49,687 nt of DNA from the NCBI GenBank assembly GCA_009103225.1, contig RHPI01001921.1, positions 1 through 49,687 on the forward strand. The letters run 5' to 3'. Shown here in pieces: positions 22,689-49,687 of the stretch. Both the position numbers and the translations under genes were made by a program. The DNA comes from Chlorokybus atmophyticus (lineage: Eukaryota; Plantae; Mesostigma and Chlorokybus algae). A model generated the notes under the pieces. The model was not told the origin of the DNA, did not search any database, and saw only the letters and a program-made list of their open reading frames with translations. Every line of letters starts with the position of its first letter. Position 1 is the first letter of the stretch.

Positions 22689-22749
22689 CACCCACAACCA
22701 TCACAACTGCAGACGCATTTACAAGAAGAATGCAACCATGCAACCTGGA

Positions 22750-27529: not shown

Positions 27530-29757
27530 ATGGCCGGATGATGGCACGCAGGGGCACCAGGTCGATGACGGGTCGAATGTCAGGCTTGATGGGCCTGGGT
27601 TCGACTAGGAGGCAGAGGACCAGGAGTCGGAGGAGGCGGCGGCGGCGGCGTGGCACATCTTGCGAGAAGTTGTGGTCGTAAGAGTTCAAGCAGCGAAGCC
27701 AGCTACTACCGGTCGCCACGTCATGGATCATGGCAGGCGTCAGCAATGGGGCTGTCCAACATGCATCATCAACATTGGACAAACCAGCAGGCAAGCCATT
27801 AAAGACCATCTTCACACAGAGAGCTGCTTGGTGGCTCGCTTTCTGCAACAAGGAGTGGATCAGGAGCTGCAGTCCTTGGAGCCCCTTGTCAGAACCATGC
27901 GGGACCAATTGCGGCTATGGGAACAAGCACAAAGGAATGCAGAGGTACGCTCAACAGTCACATGCATTTCCTTGCAAGAGCAATTTGTTTTTTAGCGCAG
28001 TCCATGTGATATATGTAGCGTGGCTGCAGGCCTCCACTATTCACCCATACCCACCCTACAGTCAAGCCGACATTGCGGAAGCAAGAGCAGATAGACAGAG
28101 CTGGGCGGCGGTATGTTGTTGCCAATCTCGCTGTGCATTATGACTGCAATGTCGGCTCCAATGCATGCCTACCTTTGCATGCTATAGGATGTGCGTGAGC
28201 GTGCGAAGTCGCGCGCGCGTGCCGAACGAAGTAGGCTGGGTTTGAGCACAGGAGCGCGTGGCCATTCGTCCGGCAATCAACCAGTAGTGCATTAACCAGC
28301 AATGACGCAGTCCATGCAATCATTCGCGCATCAACCAGCAATGTCGTAGGTGACTGTTCTAAGCAACCAAGTAATTACGGTGTGACGCAGTTGACTATTG
28401 CAATTGTTGTGTCGCATGCATGCAGCTAACCCACATGTGATTGGTTGACAGCACCTCAGTGCACTAGGTCCTATTAAAACTCCTATGCAAGCCTGGATTG
28501 GATCCCATCCAATGGTCCTTCAATCCCACTTGCTGATGGGCGCGGCGGCAATGCGGCATCAGTTTAACATGCATGTTGGCCTGTTGAATCTCAACATGAC
28601 CATTGGGGCAGTGGCGCCTCCTGTGCCCATAGCTTCGTAACGAGTCTGCAAGGGTGGCGGGGGAAGTGCACCCAATACCACCTTGTCAGCCCCCATGTCT
28701 TCCGCTGCTCCATGCAGCCCACGGGCCATTGAGGTAAGTCGCTGTCTTTTATGCTTGTGCCTTTGTAATAATGCGTTTGGCACTGCATAAGCTTACATTC
28801 GTCATTTGCAATATTGTAAGCCATCTTATCATGTGTCCTATATACAGGCCCCCTTGCTGCATGCACAAGTGGTCTCACCTGACGCACCTGCTCCCCTCGC
28901 AGCCAGAGCGCATCTACCTTCCGTGGCACCAGTCCTTTATGCACTGCCGTCTCCTCCACGAGCAGCACCGATAATTGCGGGGCAACAATCCTTCTTGCCG
29001 CAACTTACGAGACCACAGCACAATGCAACTACCGATGTGGCTTCTGCACCTACCTTACCCCACCCGCTGCAAATTGAAGCCGGCAGTCTGCCCCAAGCTC
29101 AGGTATTTTATGATTCACTGTGACTGTCACCGTCGCTGAAACGACCACAAGTCGCCTGAAATCAAAGACAGAATGTAAGTGTTGAGAACGCTTCCTCAGT
29201 GCATGGTCGTACATGTCATTGTGCATTCATAGACTGCACTTGTGTCACCAGAACGACACAGTCAATCACACTGTCAGAGAGGCGTCTGTACGCCTTTTAG
29301 AAGGGATATTTAACTCAGCTGAAAGCAAGTGCGCTGAGCTTACACGCGTGCTAGATAGACTATTCCTGCTGTTAACACAGATAGACTCCAGAATAGAACA
29401 AGAGAAAGAACAGAGGGTATGTTTGTGTTATTCGTAAATGAGTTGTGTGTAATTCGTGTTCTAACTGGTGGTTATGATTCGCAGAAACTTACCAAGGAAG
29501 TGTTCCGTAAGGCAGAGACCACAATTCGCAAAGGCCTTCAAGAGATCCGCTCCCGCTCAGGGCGCCATGGTGACACGGGCTGCAAATCAGCACAGGCTGA
29601 AGGAGCAGGATTATCAGTCAACCTGTCCCTAGTTTTCTGGCCATTGTTGCCACAGTTGAACACTTGGCTGGCAGAAGGCACTGCGGTCACAATTGTTACA
29701 CTATGCACAAAGCACCTAAGCTTCCAGGTGACAAAAGGCTCACACCGCAGTCTATAG
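27530..29757 (+). pseudogene. Gene A: acidic leader, CxxC-x12-H-x5-C zinc-finger-like exon, Pro/Ala-rich exons, then coiled-coil exons
   Basis: WGCPTCIINIGQTSRQAIKDHLHTESC, with GT-AG introns. Downstream exons NDTVNHTVREASVRLLEG...EKEQR and KLTKEVFRKAETTIRKGLQEI. In-frame TAG at 27606 (GFD*EAEDQE). Ends are approximate. Confidence 0.55.
27717..29126 (+). repeat. Left arm of a long inverted repeat (at least 1.4 kb); may extend further left
   Basis: Reverse complement of 48269-49687. The ORF track shows near-identical peptides at 27730..28143(+) and 49261..49674(-). Confidence 0.97.
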
Positions 29758-29920
29758 CACGAGAGTCTACAGCACGCGACTTATTGCAGCTGCGATAACC
29801 AGTGCCGAAGTCATACTGCGCACAACGCACAACACATGCGCACAACGCACGCGCGAGCGAACAAAACTTCCCAATGACGGAATCTGACAACAAATACTTC
29901 CAAATGAATCAACTTCTAGT

Positions 29921-30004
29921 GCCTGTGACCTAGGGTTCGTCGGAGCGGCCTATGCGGTCGCCTGTGACCTAGGGTTCGTTGGAGCGGCCTATGCGGTCGC
30001 CTGT
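29921..30004. repeat. 39-bp tandem duplication at the probable 5' end of the SET gene
   Basis: gcctgtgacctagggttcgt(c/t)ggagcggcctatgcggtc x2, plus gcctgt. Confidence 0.9.
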
Positions 30005-31604
30005 CACGCCGCCGGCAGCCTGATGTTTGGTGTGCCTAAGGTAGTTCTGGCGGTGCTGGCAGAGGTGTGGTAGCAGAGTGCTGGCTTGTGTTGCACAAGA
30101 GTGTTATCCAATGCAAGTTGTTGCAGAGATCAGCAAGCTGAGAAACACCATGGATGATGACATCCCTACCGTGTCGGCGGCATCGTCGACTTCAGAGGAG
30201 ACTCGTAGGCAGCCTTCACACCAGCGGACTTTCTATTGGCACTGTCCCTACTTCAGAACAAATGTGAAGGCGGGCCATGTAAAGTCCAACGGGCTTCCAA
30301 AAACCACACACACCAAGACTGCAAAGATCGCGCAGCACCTGCACATCAGATATTGCAGGTACATGCGCAGACAAACCAACCAGGGCGGCAGGGAGACAGC
30401 AGATGAGCTGAAGGCACGGATGGGGGATTCTCTCTCCAAACCAGTACGGGTGCGTGCGATGTTGTGAAAGTGCGTTTGTTCATATGGACTTGTAGACTCA
30501 TAGACGTTGTATGCATGCTAGTGAACTAATATCTGGGCAAAAGACTATGCAACAAAATTGACTTACGTGAAGCATATGTTAGCGTGCAGGCCCTGAATCA
30601 TCCAAAACAAAGCAGAGTTTCCGTCGACAACGTGCGGAGAGTCACCGAGGAGTATCTGCGAAAGCATCACACTGGAGCCTTTGCATTTGTAAGCACATGC
30701 AGCATGCAACTGTTAGCGAAACAAATGCCATTACAACGCCTTGGTTGCTAACCTTGTCGCTTGTTACACAGAACAAGAAATTCTGGGATGACGCTGAGCA
30801 CGATTACAACAACATCCCCCTCTACCCGAAGGAGCAAATCACACCAAAGCGGACAAAGCGGCAGCGGCAGCAAGGTTCAGGTGTTGCCGCTGCAGGTTCA
30901 GCGGCAGAAGCGTCAACAGCGGAGGAAACCGAGTTCGACTTCGCTGCGACAGAGACGAGGGAGCCAGAGGAGCTTGAGGAACAACTTGAGGATGTGATGC
31001 AGGAGGGGTCGGAGGAGTCAGCGCAGAAGGCTACGGAGGAGGTGTTGGAATTGGAGCAGTCTGAGGAGGAAGAGGTGGTGCCACCTGCAAAGAAACCGAG
31101 GCATGCCAGCTGGCAAGGCATGAAAATAGGAACGTCATCGGCAGCCGGCTCTCCCCAAACTCCCCAAACACCTGTGAGTATCCATGCGAATACTCATAGA
31201 CTGCTCTGATCAGGACATGTGCGCGTTGTCTTATGTCATAGGCCGAGACAGTTTGTGAGTCAATAAATGTATATGATATCCTTACCATTGTCTTACACAC
31301 AGGGTGGCAGGGTGAACCAACCTGTAGCCGATGCCCCACAGGCTACTAAGCCAAGGCAACACCGATCAGCGCAGGCCCGTGAACTGGCTGTGACCAATGC
31401 TGCAGCCGAGGTCAATCGATTCACCAAGACGGGGATGGACGCTGTGGAGTTGCCACCGCCATCAGAAGAACATCTGCGGGTGCGTCTTTGTTCGCATGGT
31501 ATCATGCATGCTGATCACATGCCATGGGCGCCATGCTGCATGCACTGCTCAGTTGCAGCCTATGACAATTCACACCAACTTACCGTCACTTGTTGTTTGC
31601 ACAG

Positions 31605-32145
31605 TGACAGAGAGCTTCCCAATCGCAAGCGCATACATAGAGCGACCGGTGACCCATGGCAGCTGTGGATGAATGGTCCAATTCCCATAGGCGAACTCTT
31701 CTATTTTGCTGGCAAAGAGTTCGTCATCAAGCCTTCAAATATCCCTGGCGCAGGGCTCGGCTTGTTCACCTGCCAGCCAATTAAGAAGGGTGACCGCATC
31801 ATGGTCTTTGACGGCAAGTGGTACTCCTACCGGGAGATGCAGAAGACATTCCCTCAGAAGGAGCACCTGCACCACCAGCGATACCACCTGCAGGTCATCA
31901 GGGACGTGCCACGCCGCCAGAGCCCTGTCATCGATGGCCACCCTCGATATGGGAACATAGCTGGCTTCCTCAACTCCAGCCGCGATACGCAGTACAAACC
32001 CAACTGCCACATCATGGACTCTGTTGATGAGGCTGCGGTGCAGACAGCTGAGGTTAGGAGTCAGAGTGTCATCGCCGCCGGGGAAGAGCTGCTCATGGAA
32101 TACGATTCCTTCCCTCCACCTACAGACGAGCAACCTACAGACCAT
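31605..32145 (+). CDS. SET domain exon (lysine methyltransferase fold)
   Basis: IKPSNIPGAGLGLFTCQPIKKGD (GxG), GNIAGFLNSS (RxxNHS-like with H replaced by S), and GEELLMEY. Confidence 0.85.
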
Positions 32146-33073
32146 GTGAGTATATGCAGCCTGTGGCTCATGCCTATAGACATCACTTGCTCTGCCAGAC
32201 ACTGTCTCCTGCTGTTATAGACTGCATATGTGAGAGCTGTGCGGTCTATGACCTTGTCATTCAGCATTGCAAACAATGTGCTGATCACCGTCTTACCTCA
32301 AGTCATGGAGTACTTTTTCGAGGCGGCCAGAGAAAAGTTTATCAAGGAGGCAACAGAGTTGGCAGCTCGCCATGGCGTCGCGCTCGAAGACGGCGCGTAC
32401 CTCGCAGCTTGCACTGCACCGCGTCAAGCTGGTGAATCTTTAGGCTCCTACACATGGAGGATGTAGTATCGAGAAGACCATTTTGTCCATGGTGCGCAAT
32501 GGTCTGAATGAAAGCAGGCGACATTGGTTGACTGAGGAGCAGATAGCTGCCGTGCGCACCAATGTTCAAAACGCCCAAGATATGACTGCACAGTGGCAGG
32601 CTGAGCAAAAGCAATTGCAGCAACGCAACAAGGCGGAGTGGGAGACACGCCGGCTACGCATCAACGCCATTGCTAATCGGAGGAAACAGAAGCGAGAAGT
32701 TTGGCTGGAAGAGCAGATGAAGACCATCCATTTTCAAGATCCAGGTGGGGCTGAGAATTACAAGTCCTTGCGCGCATACCTCATCAACAAGTGGGAGTGC
32801 AACCATCCTTGGCCATCCATTCCTGCTGCAGCTCCTGGTCCGACTCCTTCTAGTGCTGCTTCTGGTGCTGCGGCTACCTCTAGCAATCCTTCTCAAGCTG
32901 CTGTCGATGCTGCTCTTGCCTCAGCTGCTGCTGCTGCTGCTGCACTTGCAGCATTGGGAGGGGTTTCGGGGCGACCTTCAGTTCCTCTAGTGTTTCCGAA
33001 CATGCCACCACAAGGAAGCGCAGAAAAGGATGCCATAGACCGTGGCCATCAAACTGCTGGAGGGACTTCAGGT

Positions 33074-33497
33074 TGTTGAGAGTATTCCTACATACGATCA
33101 GCATCGACCCTCCACACAGGAGTAGAAGGTCGTAAGGACGAGCACTAGGTCCGGACTTAGCAAGATGGCATCGTCGGACCAGACTCCGGACTCCAGACTG
33201 GAGCCTTACTAACTGCTTCGTATCTCCGCGTATACTTACTCATATTAGGCGTGTAAGAGCTTGTTGGAAAGCTCTGGTTGTAAGGAAGACAACACAGCTT
33301 AGAGCGCGTCAAACGGCTGAGTATAGCTTACGCAGTGCTTGCAAACGTAGACGTGTGTGTAACTGGCTGGTATAAGAACCAGCGGACAACTTGTAATAGA
33401 TGAATGTGATGTGACTTGTGTATGCTCTGGTGGCGGTAGCTCTGTCTCTGTGTATCCATGCTTGCCTCAACTACATGTGCATGCTAGTCCTTCAACA
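33074..33497 (+). repeat. 5' LTR (424 bp)
   Basis: TG...CA ends; 7 mismatches to the 3' LTR by eye. Confidence 0.97.
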
Positions 33498-33510
33498 GGT
33501 TATGGGCCCA
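33498..33510 (+). other. Primer-binding site of the half-tRNAiMet type
   Basis: GGTTATGGGCCCA directly after the 5' LTR, as in Drosophila copia-type elements primed by a tRNAiMet fragment. Confidence 0.85.
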
Positions 33511-33624
33511 CACTACGCTTGAGGAGTGTGAGACTAGCTTGTGTGCATAGTAGTTCTACACTACGGTAGCTTGTTGGTAGCAGAGCCTTGGGTGTCAACT
33601 GCAAGAAAGGCAGGCTCGACAGAA

Positions 33625-36600
33625 ATGGAGGCGACCTACGACAAGGGGCAGATTGCAAAGCTGGACACCGACAACTACAACACATGGTGCGTGGAGATGA
33701 AGGCCTTGCTCATCCACAAGAAGGTGTGGAAGTACGTTGATCCGAAGGCACCACCACCAACACCAGGAGCGAACACTGTGTGGTCAGAGCATTCAGCAGA
33801 AGCACACTCTTTGCTTGTGTTGAACAGCAAACCGCATCACTTTCCCATGCTCACTGCATGTGAAGATGGTAGACAAGCTTGGGAAAAGCTATCAGCCGTT
33901 TTCAGAGCCAAGAACAATGCCAGAAAGTTGCATCTACGCAAGCAGCTCAGCGCACTCAGGAAGGAGGCAGCAGAACCCATCACAAAGTATGTTGCGCGCG
34001 CGAGAGAGCTGTGGGCGGACCTCATCAACGTCGGCCACAACATGGGGGAGACGGAGGTAGTGCTGGCCATTGTTGCAGGGCTACCAGCAGAGTACGAGGT
34101 CGTCGCAACCCTGCTGGAGACGTCATCATCGGAGTTGACGTTGGACGATGTGCTACCGAAGCTGCTCACCGTGGAGCAGAGGGTTGTGAAGAAGGACGAG
34201 CAAGCGGATGCCGTCGCCTTCTACACCGGCAAGCACGCAAAGAAGAGCAACCATGAAGAGAAGTACAAGGGCAACAAGCCAGGCAATCCTCGTCACAAAG
34301 ACCTCACATGCCACTGGTGTGGTTGGAAGGGGCACATTGTGAAGGACTGTAGGAGGAAACAACAGGGGCAACCTAGAGCAAGCACCAGCAACAGCGGCAA
34401 CGAGCACCAACACAAGGAGAAACATGTCGCCTTCACTGCATCCAGTTCGAGGGCGGGCACAGCTTTCTGGGTGGTGGACTCTGGCTGCGATCGTCATCTC
34501 ACACCAAACAAGGAGGTGATGGAGGGCTACAGGAAGCTGACGTCCACAATCAAGGTGGCGGGCTTCGGTGGCGAAGTACTGGTGGCTGAGGGAGTTGGCA
34601 ACGTACGACTCCAGTGCAAGGTTGGTAACACACTACGCGAGGTGTTGTTACGCAACGTCCTGCATGTTCCTAAGGCTATTGCGAGTCTATTCTCTGTGAG
34701 GGTTGCGGAGCGCTTAGGCGCGGAGATCCTATTTCGGAAGGGTGGCTGCTCAGTCATCCTTGACGGGGTCGTGCACATGGTTGGAATCGCTGATCCGGGA
34801 GGGCTCTACCACGTGGAGCAGCCTCAAGACAGAGACATTCAAGCCATGGTGGTGAAGGACAAGGAGTCGCCAACATTGTGGCATCGGAGGTTCGGGCATC
34901 TCAGCTACGTCAACCTCACTCGCCTTGTCGCTGAGAAGATGGTCAAGGGCATCCATCTCAGCACAGAAGAACTCAAGAATGCATCAGGTGCACTTTGTGA
35001 ACCATGCCTGGTTGCAAAGCAGCATGCTATGCCATTCCCATCATCCTCTTCTAGCAGTCAGCATCCTTGCGAGCTTGTGCACATGGATGTCTGTGGCCCT
35101 ATGCGCATTGTGGCGAAGGGAGGGGCCAGGTACTTTGCTACATTCCTCGACGACTACAGCAAGCTGTCCATCATCTTTCCATTGACGCTGAAGTCAGAAG
35201 TTGCTGGAGCTGTGCGCACAGTTGTGGCCTTGTTGGAGACCCAGTCTGGCAACAAGATGAAGGCAATGAGGAGTGATCGAGGAGGGGAGTACATCAACAA
35301 GGAGTTGAAGGAGTTCTTCGCCAGCAAGGGCATACGCCACGAGACAACGGCACCCTACACCCCGCAGCAGAATGGAGCAGCTGAACGCCTCAACAGGACA
35401 CTCTTGGAGCGTGTTCGAGCCATGCTCAACGACACAAAGATGGAAGACAGTTTGTGGAAGGAGGCGGTACTCACTGCCAACTACATCCGCAACAGGTCTC
35501 CGGTGAGCTCAGAGCAGAAGACTCCGTGGGAGCACTTCTATGGAGCCACACCAGATGTGAGTGGTATGCGTGTGTTTGGATGCACGGCATATGCACTAGT
35601 GCCTAAACAGCTCAGGCACAAGCTGGAGCCGGTCAGCAAGAAGGGCATCTTCGTTGGCTATGAACCGGGTTCCAAGGCTTACAGGATCTTGCTCGAGGAC
35701 ACTCAGAAGATCATCGTGAGCAGAGAGGTGGTTTTCCACGAGGGATTATCACAACCAGAAGCAGGCTTCTTTCCTGAAGATGAAGCACAGCCGGAGCATC
35801 CTGAAACAGTGGAGGCTACAGGCAAGGCCATCATCGACGATAAGGGTGAGCAGGACTCCACTGTAGCAGACAAGCAGTCGCACCTGCAGCAGGAGCACGC
35901 AGCTCGGAGATACCCAGTGAGGGAGAGAAAGGCACCTGACTTCCTACACAAGGCACACGTCGCCAGTGTGCAGAATGAGGAGCCAAGCACCTACGAGGAG
36001 GCATTGTTAGCACCAGATGCGGAGCAATGGCAGCGTGCTATGGACGAGGAGATTGCGTCACTCCATGCCAACAACACTTGGTCACTGGAGCAGTTACCGC
36101 AAGGAGTGAAGACCATTCCAGTGAAATGGGTCTTCAAGGTGAAGCGTGATGGTCAGGGCAACATTGAGCGCTACAAGGCAAGACTGGTGGCAAAGGGCTT
36201 CTTGCAGCAGGAAGGTGTGGACTTCAACGAAGTGTTTGCACCTGCAAGTAAGCATACCACCTTCCGTGCACTGCTAGCTATGGTTGCTGCTGAAGACCTA
36301 GAGCTGCATCACCTGGATGTGAAGACTGCCTTCCTCTACGGAGAGCTGGAGGAGGAGATCTTCATCGAGCAACCACCTGGATATGAAGAAGGGGAGAGAG
36401 GCACAGCGTGCAAGCTGATCAAGGCACTGTACGGGCTGCGACAGGCACCGCGTATGTGGCACATCAAGCTCACCAAGGAGCTGGAGGCACTTGGCTTCAC
36501 CGCATCCTCTGCAGACCCTGGGCTCTTCATCCATGCAGACAACAAGGTCTGGCTGCTCGTGTATGTTGATGATATCATCATCACCGCCAGGCAGGTGCAC

Positions 36601-37512
36601 CACCTGCAGGAGACGAAACTTGCTCTACAGCAAGCATTCTCAGTTCGTGATCTTGGAGAGGCCAAGTGGTTCCTTGGCATGGTGATTGAGCGCGACAGGG
36701 CGGCTCGCACAATCAAGATCAGTCAGGAGCAGATGGTGAGAAGACTCGTCACCAAGTTTGGGCTCACTGAAGCGAAGACCAAGACCACACCGTTGGCACT
36801 TGGCACTGCCCTCATCAAGGCAAAGGATGAGGAGGTACTCGACAAGGCTCAGTATCCATATGGTGAGCTGGTAGGCAGCATGCTCTATCTGGCAGTGTGC
36901 ACACGTCCCGATGTTGCACATGCTGTGGGAGTACTTGCTCGCTACATGTCTGCACCGAGCATGGAGCACTGGAGAGCAGCAAAGGGAGTACTACGCTATG
37001 TTGCTGGGAGCGCAACAGTTGGCATCAAGTTTGGGAGCGGGAGCACTGAGTTGGAGGGCTACTGCGACTCGGACTTTGCTGGTGACCTCAACAGCAGGAG
37101 GTCCACTACAGGCTACGTCTTCAAGCTGAACGGAGGCGTGGTGAGCTGGAACAGCAGGCTGCAGCCAACAACAGCAGCATCTACATCAGAGGCTGAGTAC
37201 ATGGCAGCGGCAGCAGCAGTGAAGGAGGCACTCTGGCTTCGCAAGCTCATGGCAGACTTGGAGCACCCCATGGCGTGCATCGTCATCAACTGTGACAACC
37301 AAGGAGCCATCAAGTTGTTGAAGCACCCTATCGCCTCGGCAAGGACGAAGCACATTGATGTCATGCATCACTTTGTGCGTGACAGAGTCACAAGGAAGGA
37401 GGTGGAGTTCCAGTACTGCAACACCGAGGGCATGCTGGCGGACTTCATGACAAAGCCATTGTCACCACTCAAGTTCAAGACTTGTTGTGCAGGACTTGGC
37501 ATCTGTGTTTGA
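33625..37512 (+). CDS. Copia gag-pol polyprotein (gag, CCHC knuckle, protease, integrase, RT, RNase H), uninterrupted
   Basis: CHWCGWKGHIVKDC; WVVDSGC; LWHRRFGHL; VHMDVCGP, FLDDYS, RSDRGGEY, QQNGAAERLN; KARLVAKG, LDVKTAFL, YVDDII; YCDSDFAGD, EAEYMA, KHIDV. Domain order is PR-IN-RT-RH. Confidence 0.98.
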   Translation: MEATYDKGQIAKLDTDNYNTWCVEMKALLIHKKVWKYVDPKAPPPTPGANTVWSEHSAEAHSLLVLNSKPHHFPMLTACEDGRQAWEKLSAVFRAKNNARKLHLRKQLSALRKEAAEPITKYVARARELWADLINVGHNMGETEVVLAIVAGLPAEYEVVATLLETSSSELTLDDVLPKLLTVEQRVVKKDEQADAVAFYTGKHAKKSNHEEKYKGNKPGNPRHKDLTCHWCGWKGHIVKDCRRKQQGQPRASTSNSGNEHQHKEKHVAFTASSSRAGTAFWVVDSGCDRHLTPNKEVMEGYRKLTSTIKVAGFGGEVLVAEGVGNVRLQCKVGNTLREVLLRNVLHVPKAIASLFSVRVAERLGAEILFRKGGCSVILDGVVHMVGIADPGGLYHVEQPQDRDIQAMVVKDKESPTLWHRRFGHLSYVNLTRLVAEKMVKGIHLSTEELKNASGALCEPCLVAKQHAMPFPSSSSSSQHPCELVHMDVCGPMRIVAKGGARYFATFLDDYSKLSIIFPLTLKSEVAGAVRTVVALLETQSGNKMKAMRSDRGGEYINKELKEFFASKGIRHETTAPYTPQQNGAAERLNRTLLERVRAMLNDTKMEDSLWKEAVLTANYIRNRSPVSSEQKTPWEHFYGATPDVSGMRVFGCTAYALVPKQLRHKLEPVSKKGIFVGYEPGSKAYRILLEDTQKIIVSREVVFHEGLSQPEAGFFPEDEAQPEHPETVEATGKAIIDDKGEQDSTVADKQSHLQQEHAARRYPVRERKAPDFLHKAHVASVQNEEPSTYEEALLAPDAEQWQRAMDEEIASLHANNTWSLEQLPQGVKTIPVKWVFKVKRDGQGNIERYKARLVAKGFLQQEGVDFNEVFAPASKHTTFRALLAMVAAEDLELHHLDVKTAFLYGELEEEIFIEQPPGYEEGERGTACKLIKALYGLRQAPRMWHIKLTKELEALGFTASSADPGLFIHADNKVWLLVYVDDIIITARQVHHLQETKLALQQAFSVRDLGEAKWFLGMVIERDRAARTIKISQEQMVRRLVTKFGLTEAKTKTTPLALGTALIKAKDEEVLDKAQYPYGELVGSMLYLAVCTRPDVAHAVGVLARYMSAPSMEHWRAAKGVLRYVAGSATVGIKFGSGSTELEGYCDSDFAGDLNSRRSTTGYVFKLNGGVVSWNSRLQPTTAASTSEAEYMAAAAAVKEALWLRKLMADLEHPMACIVINCDNQGAIKLLKHPIASARTKHIDVMHHFVRDRVTRKEVEFQYCNTEGMLADFMTKPLSPLKFKTCCAGLGICV

Positions 37513-37554
37513 CTACAGGAGCAAGCGTTGGAGGTCAAGCTGCTCGCGTGGGAG

Positions 37555-37978
37555 TGTTGAGAGTATTCCTACATACGATCAGCATCGACCCTCCACACAG
37601 GAGTAGAAGGTCGTAAGGACGAGCACTAGGTCCGGACTTAGCAAGATGGCATCGTCGGACCAGACTCCGGACTCCAGACTGGAGCCTTACTAACTGCTTT
37701 GTATCTCCGCGTATACTTACTCATATTAGGCGTGTGAGAGCTTGTTGGAAAGCTCTGGTTGTAAGGAAGACAATGCAGCTTAGAGCGCGTCAAACGGCTG
37801 AGTATAGCTTACGCAGTGCTTGCAAACGTAGACGTGTGTGTAACTGGCTGGTATAAGAACCAGCGGACAACTTGTAATAGATGAATGTGATGTGACTTGT
37901 GTATGCTCTGGTGGCGGTAGCTCTGTCCGTGTGTATCCATGCTTGCCTCAGCTACATGTGCATGCTAGTCCTTCAACA
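37555..37978 (+). repeat. 3' LTR (424 bp)
   Basis: Matches the 5' LTR; preceded by a short purine-rich GTGGGAG. Confidence 0.97.
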
Positions 37979-38403
37979 CAGGTGCTGCTGAGGGTCAATA
38001 TGTCAGCGGTAATGAACCTGCTGGAGGTGATGAACCTGCTGGAGGTGATCATCATGAACCTGCTGTTGGTGATCATCATGGAGACGGCAGTGGTGATGAA
38101 CCCAGCGATCATGAAAGCAGCGATGATGACAGCAACGGTGACAGTGACAACGATGCTCGTAAGAAGTTGGAAGACGGTATCGCTGCTGCACGTTCAGGAG
38201 TCGCCAATGCTAGCAACATAGCCAAGTTGGTTGAAGGCTTTGTCCAGAACTTTCAACAGCAAGTGCCCCAACTTCAGGTAACCCTTGGCCAAAGTCAGCA
38301 TTAGTCAGTCTATGGCTACTTGTGCGTCACAGGCCGCATTGTCCATTTCGGTCAATGACCCCGCTGTTTCGTGTTTGTGCTCTAACTTGGTGTTTCGATG
38401 CAG

Positions 38404-40707
38404 CAACACCTAGAAGAGGCGTCTACAAGCACCCAGGCCGTTGCATCCGCCAGCACTGATGTCAAACGCATCCATGCAGCGGAGTTATCAACCGCTGTTG
38501 AAGCAGCAGCCAAGGCTAGCCAACAGCATGCAGAGTTGCTGCAACAGGAGAAGAAGGCCAGAGAGGAGGCCGGGGGGCGCATATAGAAGCTTGAGGTGGC
38601 AAAGCAGGAGAAGGAAAGAGAGGAGGCCGTGGGGCGCATACCACAGTTGCAGGCCGCTCTCGATGCAGCCAATGCTGAGCGACAAAGGCTGCAACAACAG
38701 GATCAGGCCAGAGCGCAAGACCGCCAGCGCGTACAACAGCTACAACAAACTTTGCAAGAGCTGGGAGAAATCAATGCTCGGCGTTCAGAGCTGGCGAGGG
38801 AAGAAGATGAACGTCTGTGCGGTGAACGCCCTGCCTTGAAAGAGCACCTCACCCGCTGCAAGCGCATTGAAGATGACGTCAAGGCCGCCTTTAACGGGAT
38901 CAGCGAGTTGGATGAAGAGTTGGTGCTGGCTTTGCAGCGTGAGGATGCAGCGCAAGAGTTGGTTGCCATCACTGATGACAGGGACCGCCTACGACAGCAG
39001 TTGGCGACAGCCGAGGAGGCCAGGAAAAAGCATCAGAACCTTCTTGACCAGCTTCAGCAGCAGCCCTCCGCGCAAGCACAAAAGCTCCAAGCAGAGGTTG
39101 ACGCCCTTAATGCAAGACTTCAGCGTCAGCAGTCACACCAAGACTCCATTCGGAAGCAGCAGGAAGACACGCTTCAGCACCAGTTGAGGTGGACCAATGC
39201 GGAGAGGCAACGCTTGGAAACAGAGAATGTGAGCCTACGGCAGGCGAGGAGCAGCTTTAAAGGATCAGCAGCAGCACGCTTGGAGGAGATCCAGAGCCTG
39301 CAAGAGCGCCTGCGCAAAGCCAAGGAGGCCTCGCAACAAGCGCGTGACGCTGCGCGCAAAGCCGAGGAGGCCTCTCAACTCCAAATCCAGCTTCAGCAAA
39401 TGGCCTCCCTCCAGCGGCAGGCGCGTGAGGAGGCGGACCGCCGACAAAAGGAAAATGCAGAACTGAGTGAGCGCCTGCGCCAAGCTGAGGAGGTCAGGAA
39501 GAAGCAGCAGGAGAGCGGCGGCCAGCAGCAGCAGGAGGCGTCCACTCAGCAGAAGGCGCTTGAGGAGGCGGACCGTCTACGACAAGACAATGCAAGCCTG
39601 ACTGAGCGGCTGCGCCAAAGCGAGGAGGCCAAGAACAAGCTGGAGGAGAGCAGCGGCCAGCAGCAGCAGCAGGAGTCCTCCGCTCAGCAGGTGCGTGAAG
39701 AGGCGGACCGCCTACGAGAGGAGAATTTGCAACTGAGTGAGCGCCTGCGCTCAACCGAGGAGGCCAGGAAGAAGCTGCAGGCGAGCAGCCTACGGCAGGA
39801 CAATGAGAGCCTGCGCGAGCGCCTGCGCACAGGCGAGGAGGCCAGGAGGAAGCTCCGTGCAGCAGTGCAGTCTCTCAATGAAAAACTCGGGAAGGCCTCT
39901 CAACAGGCGCAAGAGGCTGGGCGCAAGCTGCAAACAGAGGTTGAATCTTTGACTGCTGAGAAGAACCGCCTCGAAGCAAGAGTGGAGTCTCTCAACAAAC
40001 AACTCCAGCGGCTGGCCTCTCAAACGCAAGAGACTGGGGGCAAGCTGCAAGCAGAGGCAAGCAGGCAAGCAGACGCCCTGAATGCGGAGGTGAAACGCCT
40101 GCGTCAGGAAAATGCCAAACTCCAGAAGTCCAATAAGAAGCTTATCAAAGACGGCAAGCGACCAGCCACCATGGACGACCCGAAAATCCTAAAGGCGCAG
40201 GCGGACCTGGCAGAATCGGAAGAAAACGTTGCTCAAGCCATGCAGCGTGTCAGTCATACAGAGAAGCTGCTCGAAGATACCCAGCAGAGGCTCGAGGAAA
40301 CGCTTCAGATGCTGCAGACTGTAATGCCAGGTGGTGGAGCTGCTGACATTCCTTCCACGTCCGCACTACCGCCAGAAGCTGAACTGCAAGAGAAAGTCAT
40401 TGAACAGCAAAGGGAGAATAATCAACTTGATAGGCGGGTCACGAACTTAGAAGATGACCTGGAGCTCGTTGAAAAACAAATTCGCATGGAAGGCGTGCTG
40501 GTTGATGAGTGGATGCGGGTTGTAATGGAGGACTTCCTGGCTAAAAGTCCTGGCGCGCGGGCACGTTCGTTGCGCGAAGGAGGAGCACAGACTACCCAGC
40601 GCATACAGCAGTACTTGCAAGGTTGGCAACAGCTGATGGCTCCAGAGCTTGCGGTCTGCATACAAGCTCGCAATGCCTGGGCGCAGAGGAACAATCAAGC
40701 GACATGA
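38404..40707 (+). CDS. Long Gln/Glu-rich coiled-coil exon with internal repeats of about 43 aa (part of the SET gene)
   Basis: 703-aa ORF plus the in-frame upstream segment. The unit EEADRLRx(D/E)NxxL(S/T)ERLRxxEExxxK occurs 3-4 times. Confidence 0.75.
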
Positions 40708-41279
40708 GACACTTGGGACAGTGATCCTGCTGCACTGTGTGTTTTGATCAGAAACACAGCGCACCATTACCTCCGTGACATCAATCAACGGCGAGCGGAG
40801 AATGGGCTCCCTTTGTACGCCAACACTTTGGAGGCGTTTGGTGCTCTGCAGCCGGGCCTCACTCACTTTTTACTTCTGCTTGATCAGAACATGGCGAACA
40901 GATCATATACACACCTCACTGCGGCACAACGGGAAGTTATGCACCTGGGCCCACACTACACCAAAGCCGTTTATCATAACCTGATCGGCTACTACTTGAG
41001 CAGACACTCACCACCACCACCGCCACCACCACCACCCTAGTATGGCCTATAGACTGAGTCAGTAGCACCCAGGTACCTACTTCAGGTTGCTTATAGTCCA
41101 GCTGCAGGCTGGGCTTACTGGCATCCATTCAGTGTACATAGCCTGCAGAACAGATGTGCATAAGTGTATACAGTAATATATTGCCATTACATGTTCATTG
41201 CTTGCCCTGCTTGCTCGGCCATCACACATGCAGTCGCATGCACACGCGCACAGTGCACATAGTTGTCTGCAAGGCGCAG

Positions 41280-44200
41280 TTATCCGAACTGGTCTATGAT
41301 ACAGACACACGCACTCACAAACACGTGAATGCAAGTGCAAACACACTCACTTGCTGCCTGCTGTCCTGGCTTCCAATACATGCGATGTTGGTTGAATTTC
41401 ATTCGCCGTCCATCATTTCTACCCCTCTCAGTCCACGCAAAGCTGCTTCTGCTGCTTCCTTGCCTTGGCCAGTCGAGCTTTGTTTTGGCTGAGAAAGGGT
41501 CCTCCACCTGGTCGCTCGCAGATGTGTTAACCACCTAGACGCCTAGCCTCCTCCCCCCTGCTTTCTTCAGGTAGTCGACTACCATATGACCGTCGGACCG
41601 CACCTCTTTGACCACAACAACCCAAGGGGGTGGGTCAGCAGGATCTTCATCTGGGGGCTCATGCGGAAGTCTGAAGTCGAAAATGGACTTGCTGTTGTGC
41701 CGCATCTCCAGGACATCGCCCTTTTCTGGCCACACCGGCAAGGGGATGTCGGCTGCAGTGACTCTCAACTCTGTGCTGTCATAGTCGTACGCCAATTGAT
41801 GATTTGCTACATCACGGTTGAGCAACACCCAGAGCTTGCGTTGCAACTGGTCTCCACCAATGAGCGTAAACTCATCTGCCAAACGCCCAATGCACTGTGC
41901 ACCAGTGTCTAGGTCAATCAGGTCATTGCCCATGGCATCACGCTTCTTGGTATAAGGCCGCACTTGCACATGGACAGTGGATTTCCGCCAATTAAACAGG
42001 TAGATCTCATCCACCCGGCATGGTGCGACAGTTGGGTCCGCCATCTTCACGTTATCAACGCCTCTGCGTCTGCAAATATTAAAGGCTTTACTCACGCACT
42101 TTATATCAAGAGATGACAGTAGACACTGCCCATGAGACACCTGACAGTGCCTATGAGACTTTAGGTCAGAGCAATAGATTACATAATTTGTAGACTAAAC
42201 CACACCTGTAGATGACCCCGTTACGCAGATATGCGCAGGACTTGCGTATGCCTCCGGGCAAGTTGCCAGTGATGTTCTCAACGCGCTTGATTTCCAAGGC
42301 CAAGGGTCCCTGAAGAGGGACAGGCTTCCTGGTGCTGCCAATAAGGATGCCCTTTTCTCTGATCAGTCGCGCATGCTCCAAGTCTGGGAATTTCTCAGCG
42401 AGGGTCCAGAGCTCCATGGCGTGCTTCTGAGTGCGCACTTCGTAATGACAGTCACTACATGCTCCACTCAGAGGCTGGTAAACCTGCTGAGAGTGCGCCA
42501 CTATATCATTAGCTCGGTGGCACAACAGCTTTCCAGTCCTCTGATCTTCTCGCATGACGTTGAGCGTCCTCAGAAACCATCTCCTTTGTGTACGCCGCAT
42601 GTAGCTGATCTCAAACTGCTTCCCATTGGTGAAGGTGTTGACATAGTTGGACACAGTGCGCTCTTGCACAACACACCAGTACACATCATGACTCCCGTGC
42701 CAGATGATGTCCTCCAGAATGTGACCGGCACCGGCCACATGCTCGTTGGGCCTTTTGTTGGTGCCAAACAGGTCCTTCGAGTAGACCCTCCATTATTTCA
42801 AGAGCGTCAGCAAGTTCCTACAGCTCCGCAGTCCAGCCATGTAGGCGAGAGTTGTGGAAGAAGATGCGGATGAGCAAGTGAAGCGCAAAGCTGACGCCTC
42901 TGGTTGCTTCGTCTACCAGATCGGACACAGTGTATGGCACAGCATACTGCACGAACATCTGCAAGTCCTGGGCCTTGAACTAAGCCAGGTGCTTGCTGAT
43001 GCCTCTTGGGAAACGTTTGCTCTTCAAGTCCATGGGGCTTGATATGCGCATCTGAGACAGCCTGCGCTCCACCTTGGCAATGTCTTCGACATGCTTTGAA
43101 CTGTCTGCACCCAGCGTACTGTGCACGAAACTCTTGCAAAGCCCCTCCAGCAACAGGTGCATCGTGTCATAGACAAAGTCACGGCAAGGGTTAAACTCAT
43201 GCAGATGCCACAACCGCCAGAGTGGAGATTTCCCTGTGATGCCGCACTCCATTGATTTTTCTTTCTGGTTTTGGCCATCGAGTGAGTCCACCATGCACGC
43301 GCTATCGAACGCATCCTTTGCTGCTCTCTCTGCTGGGGGATGGCGGCAGTAGTAGCGATTGTCACCATAAAAATGGTCTGTACGTGTCCTCGTAGTATCT
43401 TCACCCTGCTCAGCACGCCGGGGCACTTGGTGCTGAGTGGCTTTGAGGAGACAACGCCGGCAGGGGACGAGGCCTCCATTCTTAAACTGGCCTATCTCAC
43501 ATTGCGCTGGCTGGTCACCCGTCCAAGCCCACAGCACTACCCGCAGCGTTATCTCTTGACCTGCAATGAAGTCAACATCAGTATCTCACAACCAGTCTGA
43601 TAGACTGTTATAGGCCGCACTGGGCAGTGCAGCCTATGACAGTCTCATAGACCGCAAGAAGGCAGATATGCTATAACCAAGTCGCAGCCACTGAACAGTG
43701 GCTATGAGACTTTAGCACACACAAAAATGGACTGCATAAGTTGTAGACTCTGGATAGTGCCTATGAGACTTTGGGTGATATAGGTGACAAAACATGTTAT
43801 AACCCAGTCATTACCTGGTTGTCGATCAAGCACGCGGCTGTCGATATGATTGGAATCGAGGCCATAACGAACAGTGAAGCCGTTCGAGTAGAGGTTCTCC
43901 AGGTCACGCACCAGTGGTTCCAGAAAGGGCTTCAGACTGTCCACACCGTTTGGGAGCTGATCAGTGGGAACAAAGAGCAAAGGCATGACGGAAGACTCTT
44001 GTGAGGAAATGCGCTTCCTGCCATTGAGCACAGAGGCACTGACAACGGTGCAGCTCTGCTTCACAGTGGTTGTTGAGCTGAAGCCGTCGGCGTGGATTAG
44101 CAGGGCTATGTTGCGAGGGTCGCCAAGAGCTTGCTGTACCATCTGATGGTTGTTTTTGTGGCACCCTGAGCATTTAAATGTTACGTGATCGCCTGCGTTG

Positions 44201-45381
44201 TGATGCTCCAAATCGACATCCGGGATGTGGTGGCAGAATGCGCAGGACACAGGCAGCTTATTTTTGTGGCGAGGGTCCCAGAAGCTGCAGTGATGCTGCT
44301 TCTTCGCACCATGCCAGTACTCAGTGTTTGCAGCAGGTAGTTGTTCCACAGGGACGTGCAACCACTCATCTTTGTGGCGCCATTCCTCAAGATAGTCGTG
44401 AGCGATTGAAGGGACAGCTAACTTGGCGCTGAGCCAGGCACCTATACGATTGTACAAGAAGTCGCAACATTCTTTGCGAACCCTGCCGCATCCCCCTCCG
44501 CACGGTGTGTTGCGAAGGCGATCAATCATTTTTTGCTTGGTCTCGCCCGTGTCCGAGTCCTCGTCATCTTCATTGAGTGTGGGATAAGGTGCATCAAACA
44601 AGTACTTGCATGTGGGACAGGCGGTCAGGCGCTGAGGAACAGGCATGCCGAGCGCGGCCAACAATTTATCCACGGCGGCAATGTCTGTTGGCAGCTCATC
44701 CGCGACAGGGCTGTGCGATATTGTGTCGCCTGAGGCTGGCGATGTCATCCCGCAACTGCTCCTGTTCAAAAGGAACCTCCAAGGCCAGCTTGACCACAGA
44801 ATTTATCTGGCCAAAGATGAGCTTCATAATCTCGTTGACGAGAGCAACCTGGACACCAGAATCTTCCAGGGCTGTCACAATCTTTAGGTAGATATCCAGC
44901 CACTTCTTCGTAGCAGACTCCGATGGTGGTTGGCTGGGCTCGAGAGGTTGACTATGGGGAATAGGTGGTGCCCACCTGCTTGCGGCTGCCAGGTCAAGTG
45001 CACGGTGCACCCTTGCAACTGCTTCGTCCACCATTTATGATGACAGATCTTGGTTAGCACGCCAGCGATCAACACCAATCCACATCACCACGCTATCAAG
45101 AACCACAAGCAAGACACACGCGTGCATGGCTGTGTCATAGACCAGACTGGCACTGTCCAGTGCCTATGAGTCCTTAGGTCTCAGCAAAGGAATGCATAAG
45201 TCGTAGACACCGGACAGTGCCTATGAGACTTTAGGTCAGAGCAATGGAGTGCATGACTCGTAGACACTGGACAGTGTCTATGAGACTTTCGGTTAGAGCA
45301 ATAGATGCATAACTCATAGACCGCACTGCTTACCATGCCGCGGCATCCACTGAAACTGCAGTTGCAGATAACCTGACGATT

Positions 45382-45415
<34 letters not shown>

Positions 45416-45944
45416 CTCTCCACATGATCAGATGACTCGTCGGCGAATGAGCCACCTCCAGCTTCAGCAGCCGGTAACAGAGGGGAATGCGAAGTGGATG
45501 GCTGGCCAGCGGTTGTAGGGGGGTGAGCAGCAGGCTGAGTTGCTGAAGCTGGCCTGCAGGGAGTCATATTAGGCGCTTAACAACTTCTGTCATAGAATCT
45601 GTGCTGGCTGTGTCGCAATGAGGCTTGAAAGCTAGCTAGTGGGGGCAAGGATGTTATCTGAGTGAGGGGTCTGCCTGCCCATCCACCTCCATGGGGGACG
45701 CGTTGTCACCAGCGAGGCCGCTGTCAGCCAAAAGTTGGGACACCTCAGCTTCTCTGCGGGCAAGAGCTTGCTCTCTTTTACTCAACTCCAAGTCCTTCTG
45801 ACGTAGGAGACCTTGCGTTGCGTTGACAACCAACTTGGAACGCTGCTTCCGCTTGTGCAAAGCTGCAAGGTTGACTGCAGGTAGCTTGAATGCGATAGAC
45901 TGGTGGAGTCTTTTAGCAATATCAGCTGCTTTTCGGTCCGCCAT
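41280..45944 (-). pseudogene. CACTA/En-Spm Tnp2-family (TnpD-like) DDE transposase, multi-exon, disabled
   Basis: DPRNIALLIHADGF, FLEPLVRDLENLY, TGDQPA, CRRC, YDTMHLLLEG, FKAQDLQMF, RPNEH...HILEDIIWHGSHDVYWCVVQER. In-frame TAGs at 42980, 42818 and 41535. Frameshifts near 44715 and 42800. Confidence 0.88.
45150..45325. repeat. 57-bp intronic repeat x3, with related copies in two other introns of the transposase
   Basis: cagtgcctatgagactttaggtcagagcaa-like cores at 45158, 45215 and 45272; also at 43696/43755 and 42145. Confidence 0.9.
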
Positions 45945-46299
45945 GCTGGGTGCATGCGTAGTACCCACGAAACCAGCTGTTCCAAAGGTTTTCGCCACCG
46001 CCGCCGCCGCCGCCGAGACTGCAGCGCAAGCCCAAAACCCTAGCAAATGGACAGAGGACCATGCATGCCCAGTGCCTGCTACTCGTTTAGCATTGGCGCA
46101 CGTGACCTTGGGAGCAACGAGCCAGGTGAGATGTGTCGTATGCTTCCGACGTCATTCTTCACCGTTGATATCATAGTATATCAACGATCTAAAACAGCTG
46201 TTGAGTTGTTGAGTGCTGTTTCGGTTTCGGAACCATGCATGGTCTATGAGGGCCGCTTGCAACCGTACCAGTGCAGCTTGGTCCCGCTTGTGAGGACAT

Positions 46300-46599
46300 A
46301 ATTGGTCCGTACAGTACATGCGTTCTGTACCAGTGCTGCCCTGGCTCATAGGCCGCAGGGCATGCGACCAGCCTTGGTCCTACTGCTCAGGCCGCGTGCT
46401 GACCAGTGCTGTACCGGTCTACAAGCCGCGGGACACGCCACCAGCCCTGGTCCGGTCATTCGGACCATATCAGCGGGCTCCGGGGCCGGACCACCGGTGG
46501 TCCGATCATGCCGGACCAGTCGCGGCACTGGTACGCTACAACGTACCAGACGTGGTCTACGGGCTGCGTACGACTGGTCCGCGCGTAAAAAGCCCTGTG
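46300..46599. promoter_or_regulatory. GGACC/GGTCC- and GTAC-dense, CpG-rich field upstream of the transposase (promoter or subterminal repeats)
   Basis: Many tggtcc/ggacca motifs in both orientations and about 7 GTAC cores. The field ends in CCCTGTG at 46593-46599 (CACAGGG on the minus strand). Confidence 0.5.
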
Positions 46600-46957: not shown

Positions 46958-49687
46958 TCAGCGTCCCTTGTTCCAACAACCTTCTTCTTTGTTTTTTTTG
47001 TCACCCTGCACATCCTGGCAGGCGCTCTCCGTGGCACTGTCACTCAGAGGAGGTAAGGCGTTATCTTCTTGCTCCACAGCCTTGCGCTTGTTGGTTGCCT
47101 CCCGTTCCTCCACGACCTCATGTTGCTTCATGAGGTCGAGCATGAAGCCTTTGTCTTTCAGCGCAGCTTTCAGGACACCTCGATCAATCTCGTTACCAAC
47201 AAGACAGGCTGGGATCAATGTGGCAAGCTTAGAGGGAGAGGGCGAGCTACAGCTGCTTCTTGATGGAGATGCCTCTGGATGGTCAGAGTGCGGTGGCAAG
47301 TGAGTCTCCGCGGCAGGAAGGGAGGGTTCTAAATTGGGATTGCGATTGCATGTGGCTGTGGTTGAGGGGAGGCAGGATGTGCAAAACACTCGGCTACTTC
47401 TTGCCTACCATAAAAAGGCGAGGCCTGAGGCGTTGGCGCAGCACTCTGGGTCACAGCCGGTGGTAGCGGGGAATTGGCAACGCCATTCCGCCACTCTTCG
47501 ATTAGCTGTGTTACCTCCGGTGGCACTTCATGCATAGGCCACGACCACTGTTCGGTGCTTGCAGGCTTGAGGAGCCAAAAGTGTGCTTCTGGCTCATCAG
47601 GAGCAGTGTTGCCCACCACCAGGACTGAGTTGGGGGCTTCTTTATTTCCAACCCAAACTGCGCTGCCGGGCCGTGGCACCCACTCCCCATGCTCGAGCTG
47701 AACGGTCACGCAGCCAATCAAGAAGCCCAGCTTGTTGGCAAACATGGTCATCTGCAGGTGCTCGACGTACACATCTTTTCTCCGTGCGATCTGTCGCACC
47801 TTGGCCATGGCTAGGTCAATGTTGCAGTTGACATCAGCCAACAGGGCCGCAGGCAGTTTGTCGTAATACTGCGCCATCTCTCCCAGGCACCAGTGGCTCT
47901 GCAGAAGTCTGAAATTCTGCTCGCCACGCCTGCATCGACAGCCTTGGCGGTGATTTTGCGGAGAGTGTGCCCCCTGCCGTCGTCGTCCATGGTGTCCAGC
48001 ATGGCCCAAAATCTGCTCGAGCTGGGGCACTTATGATCATCCAGGACACTTTGCGCTATGGATGGCCTGGCGCGAAATACACAATGGTAGAAGCAATTAC
48101 CATCCGTTGGCGCATTGAAGTGGTCCCATGAGGCGAGCTGGCCACCTAGCATGACTGATGGCCGTATGCGGGTTGCGGCCAGCTCTTTTGATGACTCGCT
48201 GGCAGGTGGTGACTCCTGCTGCATGCGCATACAGCACTCACATGGTGTGTCCAACTGTGGACGGCAAGAGTCACAGTGACTGATAAAGTACCTGAGTTTG
48301 GGGCAGACTGCCGGCTTCAACTTGCAGCGGGTGGGGTAAGGTAGGTGCAGAAACCACATCGGTTGTTGCATTGTGCTGTTGTCTCGCCGGTGGCGGCAAG
48401 AAGGATTGTTGCCCCGCAATCACCGGTGCTGCCCGTGGAGGAGATGGCAGTGCATGAAGGACTGGTGCCGCGGAAGGTGGTTGCGCTCTGGCTGGGAGGG
48501 GAGCAGGAGCTGCAGGTGAGACCACTTGTGCATGCAGCAAGGGGGGCTGTATACAGGACCCAGGATAAGATGGCTCACAATGTTGCAAAGGACGAATATA
48601 AGCTTGTGCAGTGCCTGACGCAGTGTTACCAAGGCACGAGCATAAAAGACAGCGACTTACCTGAATGGCCCATGGGCTGCATGGAGCAGGGGAAGTCATG
48701 GGGGCTGACAAGGTGGTATTGGCTGCACTCTCCCCGCCACCCTCGATGGCAGACTCATCACGGAGCTCGTGAGCCATGGGCACATCATGCGCCACTGCCC
48801 CAATGGACATGTCGGGATTCAACAGGCCAACATGCATGTTAAACTGATGCCGCATTGCCGCCGCGCCCATCAGCAAGTGGGATTGAAGGACCAGTTGATG
48901 GGATTGAATCCAGGCTTGCATAGGAGCTCCAACAGGACCTAGTGCACTGTGGTGCTGTCAACCAATTACATGTGGGTTAGCTGCATGCTTGCGACACTGC
49001 AATTGCAATAGTCAACTGCGTCACACCGTCATCAGTTGGTTGCTTTGAACAGTCACCTGCGGCATTGCTGGTTGATGCACGAATGATTCCATGGACTGCG
49101 TCATTGCTGGTTGATGCACTATTGGTTGAATGCCGGACGAATGGCCACACGCTCCTGTGCTCAAACCCAACCTACTTCGTTCGGCACGCGCGCGCGACTT
49201 CGCACGCTCACGCACATCCTAGCATGCAAAGGTAGGCATGCATTGGAGCCGACATTGCAGTCAACATGCACAGCGAGATTGGCAACAACATACCGCCGCC
49301 CAGCTCTGTCTATCTGCTCTTGCTTCCGCAATGTCGGCTTGACTGTAGGGTGGGTATGGGTGAATAGTGGAGGCCTGCAGCCACGCTACATATATCACAT
49401 GGACTGCGCTAAAAAACAAATTGCTCTTGCAAGGAAATGCATGTGACTGTTGAGCGTACCTCTGCATTCCTTTGTGCTTGTTCCCACAGCCGCAATTGGT
49501 CCCGCATGGTTCTGACAAGGGGCTCCAAGGACTGCAGCTCCTGATCCACTCCTTGTTGCAGAAAGCGAGCCACCAAGCAGCTCTCTGTGTGAAGATGGTC
49601 TTTAATGGCTTGCCTGCTGGTTTGTCCAATGTTGGTGATGCATGTTGGACAGCCCCATTGCTGACGCCTGCCATGATCCATGACGTG
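46958..49687 (-). CDS. Gene A': zinc-finger and Pro/Ala exons shared with gene A, joined to an OTU-family cysteine protease domain; 5' end lies outside the window
   Basis: After the shared exons an acceptor near 48221 leads to HFNAPTDGNCFYHCVF (OTU DGNC motif) and later EAHFWLL (catalytic His). An intron of about 47329-47408 restores the frame to EPSLPAAETH...KGR*. A frame change near 47930 is unresolved. Confidence 0.7.
48269..49687 (-). repeat. Right arm of the long inverted repeat, running off the window end
   Basis: Reverse complement of 27717-29126. Confidence 0.97.

Follow-up and report, generated by a model that had tools for sequence, protein, structure and literature searches.

The 49,687-nucleotide stretch of Chlorokybus atmophyticus DNA considered here (contig RHPI01001921.1; "the window" below, to which all coordinates refer) carries a transposon of the CACTA/EnSpm superfamily with two core genes, namely a SET-domain gene and a convergent gene for a Tnp2-type transposase. 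Scattered through the introns and upstream regions of these genes are copies of a short motif, described in an initial annotation as the 11-mer TYATAGRCYGC and extended by our alignment to the 12-mer TYATAGRCYGCA, which might represent a cis-element maintained by selection. The motif counts given below for the element derive from this single window and from one decayed copy.

Organization of the core genes

The SET gene starts with an ATG at 30150, is divided by GT..AG introns and encodes its SET domain in the exon spanning 31605-32145, before being cut at 33074 by a copia element (Table 1). The Tnp2-type DDE transposase places the element in the CACTA/EnSpm (CMC) superfamily. The transposase matched the Pfam profile PF02992 with E=2.3e-5 and 24.1 bits, which is under the 28.6-bit cut-off, while a phmmer search recovered 155 related proteins (best E=4e-25; identity 24-45%). 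Its open reading frame (ORF) is without a close relative in two protein databases, the best matches showing 35-38% identity. Homology detected by tblastn runs from 44694 to 42313. It confirms intron B, as the corresponding gap in the alignments is bordered by residues 294/294 of one homologue (P0003) and 739/743 of another (P0014); the remaining introns of both genes rest on GT..AG borders and ORF stops.

Enrichment and distribution of the motif

An exact search for TYATAGRCYGC on both strands of the window yielded 10 matches, seven on the plus and three on the minus strand, against 0.12 predicted from dinucleotide-preserving shuffles, none of which held more than 1. For the element (17.2 kb), analytic Markov models predict equally low numbers, 0.05-0.12 at orders 1-3 and 0.06 after training on the first 27.7 kb of the window. 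The nine full matches listed in the initial annotation were all recovered at their positions, and the excess over chance that it had reported holds and is slightly stronger, there being a tenth site at 31555-31565 on the minus strand that it had overlooked. Its five near matches proved to be of two kinds: those at 29945 and 29984 do differ from the motif by one mismatch, whereas those at 30498, 45135 and 46241 carry 2-3 mismatches and retain the 8-mer core TCATAGAC alone.

The exact sites are confined to two intervals, 29227-32251 and 43608-46356. Both-strand searches found no exact match in 1-29226, in keeping with the earlier remark that the first 29 kb hold just partial matches, and likewise none in the copia insertion (33074-37854) or in 32252-43607. 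At the density seen in the element, 19 exact sites would be predicted in the 32.5 kb of neighbouring DNA and nested copia taken together, where there are 0; the copia insertion acts here as a negative control within the window. Unrelated metagenome DNA, taken as a control from outside, contained 3 matches in 748 kb, against a uniform expectation of ~2.9. When one mismatch is permitted, the window contains 18 matches against 5 expected, and among the 8 additional ones those at 29747, 29945, 29984 and 31236 adjoin exact sites.

The ten exact sites correspond to seven independent loci, starting at 29227, 31194, 31555, 32215/32241, 43608/43629/43645, 45314 and 46346. Nine of the ten lie outside ORF-supported exons, which bears out the earlier statement that almost all are non-coding. 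The site at 31555 is ambiguous, in that it falls in a stretch with textbook intron borders that is nevertheless 125 nt long, not a multiple of 3, with the frame open throughout. The site at 29227 probably belongs to a spacer or intron that precedes the SET gene.

Low-complexity words aside, no 8-mer of the element is more over-represented than the core TCATAGRC, with 19 copies as against 2 in the left 27.7 kb and 0 in the copia insertion. Other enriched 8-mers, including CATGCAGC and GACATTGC and several more, were set aside, their copies lying mostly in the two arms of the inverted repeat, so that their excess is largely double counting. The word TGACAG shows no clear enrichment either, with 0.7 copies per kb in flanking DNA and 1.0-1.6 in the segments of the element. 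A metagenome scan for the 15-mer GTCTCATAGGCACTG returned 120 loci, each with a single match and otherwise unlike the window, as expected of chance hits, and these loci were used purely as a background control. A literature search for the motif string found nothing beyond primer coincidences, and the motif is missing from two of the transposase homologues (L001 and L002), both of 39%-GC organisms.

Table 1. Motif sites, genes and repeats of the element region
Feature	Coordinates	Strand	Remarks
12-mer TCATAGACTGCA	29227..29238	+	19.6 bits; non-coding, just past inner end of left inverted-repeat arm
12-mer TCATAGACTGCT	31194..31205	+	SET intron 3, 20 nt past donor
Near copy TCATAGGCCGA of motif	31236-31246		SET intron 3, beside 31194 site
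12-mer TCATAGGCTGCA	31554..31565	-	Probable SET intron 4
Inverted site pair TTATAGACTGCA ... TGCGGTCTATGA	32215..32251	both	SET intron 5; hairpin-capable dyad
Three exact 12-mers (43608+, 43628-, 43645+) plus degenerate cores	43596..43670	alternating	Transposase intron B
12-mer TCATAGACCGCA	45314..45325	+	Transposase intron A, 13 nt inside donor end; abuts 57-bp array
12-mer TCATAGGCCGCA	46346..46357	+	~400 bp upstream of transposase ATG (leader or promoter)
Core copies near 46346 site	46242 and 46417	-	Transposase upstream region
39-bp tandem repeat	29921..30004		2.2 copies, 97% matches; ~150-230 bp upstream of SET ATG
57-bp tandem repeat	45158..45321		2.9 copies; transposase intron A
Units related to 57-bp repeat	43667-43776 and 42116-42195		Repeat thus in all three transposase introns
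SET-domain gene, 5' part	30150..33073	+	Pfam SET E=2.3e-9; splice borders, joined translation
SET introns	~30450-30589, 30689-30771, 31174-31302, 31480-31604(?), 32146-32302, 32432-32517	+	
Tnp2-type (CACTA/EnSpm-like) transposase gene	41535..45944	-	Convergent with SET gene
Transposase introns	A ~45090-45337; B 43561-43816; C 42072-42207	-	
Nested copia-type long terminal repeat (LTR) retrotransposon	33074..37854	+	300-nt LTRs; 1323-aa gag-pol ORF
Inverted repeat, left arm	27717..29134	+	Partner 48260-49687, 90-99% alike, cut by window end

Sequence features of the 12-mer

Alignment of the ten sites revealed a twelfth conserved letter, an A in 9 of the 10, so that the repeated unit is the 12-mer TYATAGRCYGCA. 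Information content is high over these 12 positions and drops to about zero on either side. Eight letters of the original 11-mer are invariant in all ten sites, a regularity partly guaranteed by the search pattern, whereas the three degenerate positions (pyrimidine or purine, Y/R) vary by transitions only and assort independently, with 6 of the 8 possible combinations represented. In a weight-matrix scan the ten sites reach 17-19.6 bits, ahead of a runner-up at 14.7; all other scores are 12.6 bits or less, a background that element and non-element DNA have in common. The distribution is accordingly bimodal, without a tail of decaying copies.

The surroundings of the sites show no corresponding conservation. 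The 40-nt flanks of the seven loci score 6.64 for likeness, compared with 6.19 +/- 0.52 for random non-coding pairs of the same element, and none retains any likeness to the 57-bp tandem repeat apart from 45314, which abuts that array. As the flanks are unrelated, the sites do not appear to descend from a longer dispersed repeat. Both genes contain the motif in sense and in antisense, often as inverted pairs, and this indifference to orientation points to double-stranded DNA rather than to a single-stranded RNA signal. Taken together, the sharp edges, the bimodality, the independent variation of the degenerate positions and the unrelated flanks favour the short site itself as the unit under selection, to judge from its sequence pattern.

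Two general explanations for an intronic motif were also considered and rejected. The first, a splicing signal, fits poorly with distances to the splice sites that range from 13 to more than 160 nt, with occurrence in both orientations and with the lack of copies in the introns of neighbouring genes. The second, in which the introns themselves would have originated from a mobile repeat (introners), is at odds with motif flanks that are no more alike than random non-coding pairs.

Tandem repeats and palindromes associated with the motif

Relatives of the motif recur in two tandem arrays. When six units of the 57-bp repeat are aligned, their best-conserved block is a shorter form of the motif that lacks YGC (AAAGTCTCATAGRCACTG; GTCTCATAGRCACTG), partnered by an inverted TCGTAGACAC box. 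In Logan contigs from related samples the 57-bp stretch is covered at 5-6 times the depth of its flanks, with loose ends leading into other sequence, which indicates that the unit exists in other contexts too. In the 39-bp repeat that precedes the SET gene, every unit includes the near-motif GCATAGGCCGC, read on the minus strand (29945 and 29984). The arrays thus carry variant or near copies, while the exact sites stand singly or as inverted pairs. The three sites of transposase intron B fall in a near-perfect palindrome with 27-nt arms (43596-43670).

These repeats bring up the alternative that the 12-mers are neutral or selfish debris, that is to say, fragments without a binding function left behind by a hairpin-forming minisatellite or tiny palindromic repeat which colonised the non-coding DNA of the element. 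The core shared with a tandem repeat in three introns, the greater depth of that repeat and its presence in other contexts, and the inclusion of several exact sites in palindromes are all in line with such an origin. However, the flanks of the seven loci resemble neither each other nor the 57-bp unit, and neutral relics would be expected to form a continuum of decayed copies, in place of which the scores are bimodal and variation is limited to three independently assorting positions. Furthermore, inspection by eye found no target-site duplications or terminal repeats around the units. On balance an origin as repeat debris appears possible, though unlikely.

Several smaller palindromic features were noted in the same non-coding regions. 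A perfect 10-bp palindrome, GYCTATAGRC, composed of two overlapping half-cores of the motif, is found at 32170-32181 in SET intron 5 and at 41043-41054 in the spacer between the convergent genes. The region upstream of the transposase gene (46260-46540) contains four copies of GCACTGGT(A/C) in both orientations, together with several GGACC/GGTCC palindromes. GCACTGGT(A/C), which has GCACTG in common with the 3' flank of several 12-mer sites, represents a possible second cis-motif.

Decay of the transposase copy

The transposase frame is broken by an in-frame TAG at 42980-42982 and by frameshifts near 42800 and 44730. Over this region, Logan contigs from two related samples match the stretch at ~98% identity, which argues against an assembly artefact. 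At the breaks these contigs show a T>C change at 42981 and have two additional letters both at 42799 and at 44730, differences that in all three cases are consistent with an open frame. As the relatives differ at the breaks and the tblastn homology continues across the in-frame stop, the copy in the window can be considered a decayed pseudogene. Differences among the contigs of the family are dominated by transitions, with an excess of C>T/G>A changes, and the observed/expected ratio of CpG is 0.56-0.73 throughout the window; both are indirect signs compatible with the action of cytosine methylation on this DNA. Within transposase intron B, the sites at 43629 and 43645 are without change among the differences listed in the spanning contig of one related sample.

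Flanking genes and other features of the window

The left arm of the inverted repeat holds the 5' exons of a gene whose product starts with MDHGRRQQWGCPTC...HLHTESC and resembles a zinc finger. The genes in both arms open with the same 74-aa exon, at 27723-27944 on the plus strand and at 49681-49460 on the minus strand, which carries a Cys-x2-Cys...His-x-His-x3-Cys module. A degenerate look-alike, WHCPYF...HLHIRYC, is encoded by the first exon of the SET gene (30150-30449, plus strand). The zinc-finger-like N-terminus matched no Pfam family and gave a weak C2H2-type lead in Atlas; it is a candidate for a DNA-binding module shared by these proteins. The minus-strand ORF at 47811-48419 displays an OTU-like catalytic cysteine box, TDGNCFYHC, and had no Pfam match at the level of the ORF. 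The exact motif does not occur in the inverted-repeat arms, in the OTU-like gene part (46.7-48.3 kb) or in a part encoding a coiled coil (37.9-41 kb).

The nested copia element looks young, given that its LTRs are 99% identical and its gag-pol ORF is uninterrupted; at the borders drawn by the repeat finder no clear target-site duplication is visible. Farther to the left, positions 22601-22688 form an 88-bp structure with 24-nt inverted arms and the ends CACTGG(C/T)AGTAGTAGTTGACAACT, which resembles either a very small foldback element or a pair of CACTG-type transposon ends lying directly against each other. Its 24-nt CACTGG... pair was examined as a candidate for the termini of the present element and rejected as belonging to something else. 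Repeats of 72 bp lie near this structure, at 22747-22853 and 23934-24184. The window begins with ~150 nt of (CCCTAA)n telomere repeat (1-150), and a short interstitial CCCTAA run is found at 15519-15536; the telomere repeat at the window start marks it as a chromosome end and the transposon cluster as subtelomeric.

A putative docking site for a DNA-binding protein

The best available reading of these patterns, which we hold tentatively and at somewhat less than even confidence, is that TYATAGRCYGCA is a selected cis-element and a putative double-stranded DNA docking site for a sequence-specific protein. On this reading selection would retain the 12-mer close to the promoters and within the introns of both core genes, the SET-domain gene and the convergent Tnp2-type transposase gene of a CACTA/EnSpm-superfamily element. 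Inverted dyads of sites would suit a dimeric binder, and local tandem duplication, as seen in the 57-bp and 39-bp arrays, could yield new copies and variants. The binder would most plausibly be encoded by the element family itself, in a role like that of TnpA or VANC, and its binding might mark the genes of the element for regulation or the DNA of the element for transposition. We observed that the sites are enriched and sharply edged, occur in either orientation without homology between their flanks, and lie in non-coding DNA of just two gene segments; the binding by a protein, its origin in the element and the effect of its binding are what we infer.

Several observations weigh against such a site. 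A comparison of 28 ORFs and exons of the element with Pfam detected no TnpA-type (PF03004), VANC-type or other DNA-binding family, in a scan that short exons may escape. A single copy of the element, itself decayed, underlies the analysis, and individual sites are not inviolable, the 43608 site having a T>A change at its second letter in a 98%-identical relative. Neither of the flanking genes, zinc-finger or OTU, has the motif in its introns. Lastly, no CACTA/CACTG terminal pair brackets the genes, so that the termini of the element were not found, and the sites span ~3 kb on each side. The initial annotation had proposed binding sites for an element-encoded protein, possibly in a sequence-specific anti-silencing system paired with SET or OTU. 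The motif does behave as the selected short cis-element which that proposal calls for, while no TnpA or VANC domain emerged from the scanned ORFs to provide its binder, and the pairing with OTU is without positional support, the OTU gene part being free of the motif.

Alternatively, the motif would belong to the host, either as the binding site of a host transcription factor or repressor or as a genome-wide mini-repeat that happens to be dense here. The sample comprises ~50 kb of one genome, and its flanking 27.7 kb yielded no host gene in which introns could be recognised, which leaves room for this explanation. Against it stand the 32.5 kb of neighbouring DNA and copia sequence devoid of exact sites and the introns of the adjacent zinc-finger and OTU genes, which are likewise without copies, and we consider a host motif improbable. 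An RNA-level signal, in which inverted copies would form stable intron hairpins in the pre-mRNA that tune splicing or feed small RNAs acting on all copies of the family, is very improbable. Transposase introns A and B and SET intron 5 do fold better than shuffled sequence (z = -5.1, -5.2 and -2.8), and with G-U wobble permitted the 32215/32251 pair can pair along its whole length in the sense RNA. However, five of the seven loci are single, lack a partner and fold unremarkably (z about -0.9 to -1.5), and such lone sites are found in either orientation relative to transcription. One exact site, together with several cores, precedes the start codons and may fall outside the transcripts. In the 43608/43629 pair, a C stands opposite an A whichever strand is read, and checks against Rfam and for tRNAs matched no known RNA family or tRNA.

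More specific versions of the docking-site reading have a low probability. An anti-silencing system in particular is conceivable as a purely inferential extension of it, and we would give it little credence. One such scheme, to which we attach a similarly small chance, would have the zinc-finger-like module dock on TYATAGRCYGCA in the promoters and introns of the element and bring a histone methyltransferase and a deubiquitinase to its chromatin, thereby countering or self-limiting silencing, with other CACTA families having diverged to different motifs. The module starts both flanking genes, one of them with the OTU-like protease box, and recurs in degenerate form at the beginning of the SET protein.

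As to its use, the 12-mer, with eight invariant positions within the original 11 letters, offers a cheap and concrete probe for DNA affinity purification sequencing (DAP-seq), electrophoretic mobility shift assays (EMSA) and the inspection of methylomes. Were it to prove repeat debris or a genome-wide word, the finding would be an ordinary one.

Comparison with known systems of transposon self-recognition

A close analogy is with VANDAL21, an Arabidopsis element of the Mutator superfamily, whose protein VANC21 has a 9-bp target (Hosaka et al. 2017, PMC5735166). The VANC21 motifs are found in introns and in upstream, intergenic and terminal regions that are non-coding, evolve through tandem repeats and form dense arrays in one orientation, and both binding and hypomethylation have been demonstrated for VANC (PMC5735166). 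The present element is comparable in that a short motif, here of 12 bp, is strongly enriched in one transposon and lies in the introns and upstream non-coding DNA of its own genes, and in that variant or near copies form the most conserved part of tandem repeats in these regions. It differs in its superfamily, which is Tnp2/CACTA-like and not that of the Mutator-like elements (MULEs), and the scanned ORFs and exons contained no VANC (DUF1985-type) gene. Its sites occur in both orientations, often as inverted dyads, without the dense same-orientation arrays of VANC21, and in contrast to the VANC target the site described here is known from sequence alone.

With maize En/Spm the present element shares the superfamily of its transposase and a 12-bp motif found in both direct and inverted orientation, with dyads and with copies in the promoter or leader. 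According to work by Gierl and Saedler and by Fedoroff, TnpA reportedly binds the 12-bp subterminal repeats of this CACTA element. The TnpA motifs are direct and inverted, form dyads and are found no more than a few hundred bp from the CACTA termini, which are inverted repeats bordered by 3-bp target duplications; some of the motifs are in the promoter or leader. The sites in the window are instead spread over ~3 kb of introns in two genes of an element whose termini were not found; no TnpA homologue was detected here, and the sequences of the two motifs are unrelated.

A third parallel is provided by the giant Plavaka EnSpm/CACTA elements of the red alga Bostrychia, which carry a SET-domain accessory gene and internal arrays of inverted-repeat tandem units (bioRxiv 10.1101/2025.02.11.637652). 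The proposal there is that a protein of the element, suggested to be of ParB-like/2OG-oxygenase type, binds these arrays and modifies the chromatin or DNA of the element, whose SET domain forms a fusion with an N6-adenine methylase domain (10.1101/2025.02.11.637652). The idea of binding by a protein of the element thus already has a precedent in algae. The window likewise contains an algal EnSpm-superfamily element with a SET-domain gene. It differs in that no ParB, 2OG or methylase domain was detected in its scanned ORFs and exons, in that its genes are intron-rich and its motif mostly intronic, and in that its transposase is 24-45% identical to any database protein. Self-recognition of transposons through element-encoded proteins has been established experimentally in few plant systems, represented by TnpA of En/Spm and VANC of VANDAL, and for the red-algal Plavaka elements it has merely been proposed. 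If TYATAGRCYGCA is indeed a selected site, it would extend the idea of self-recognition to another lineage and superfamily.

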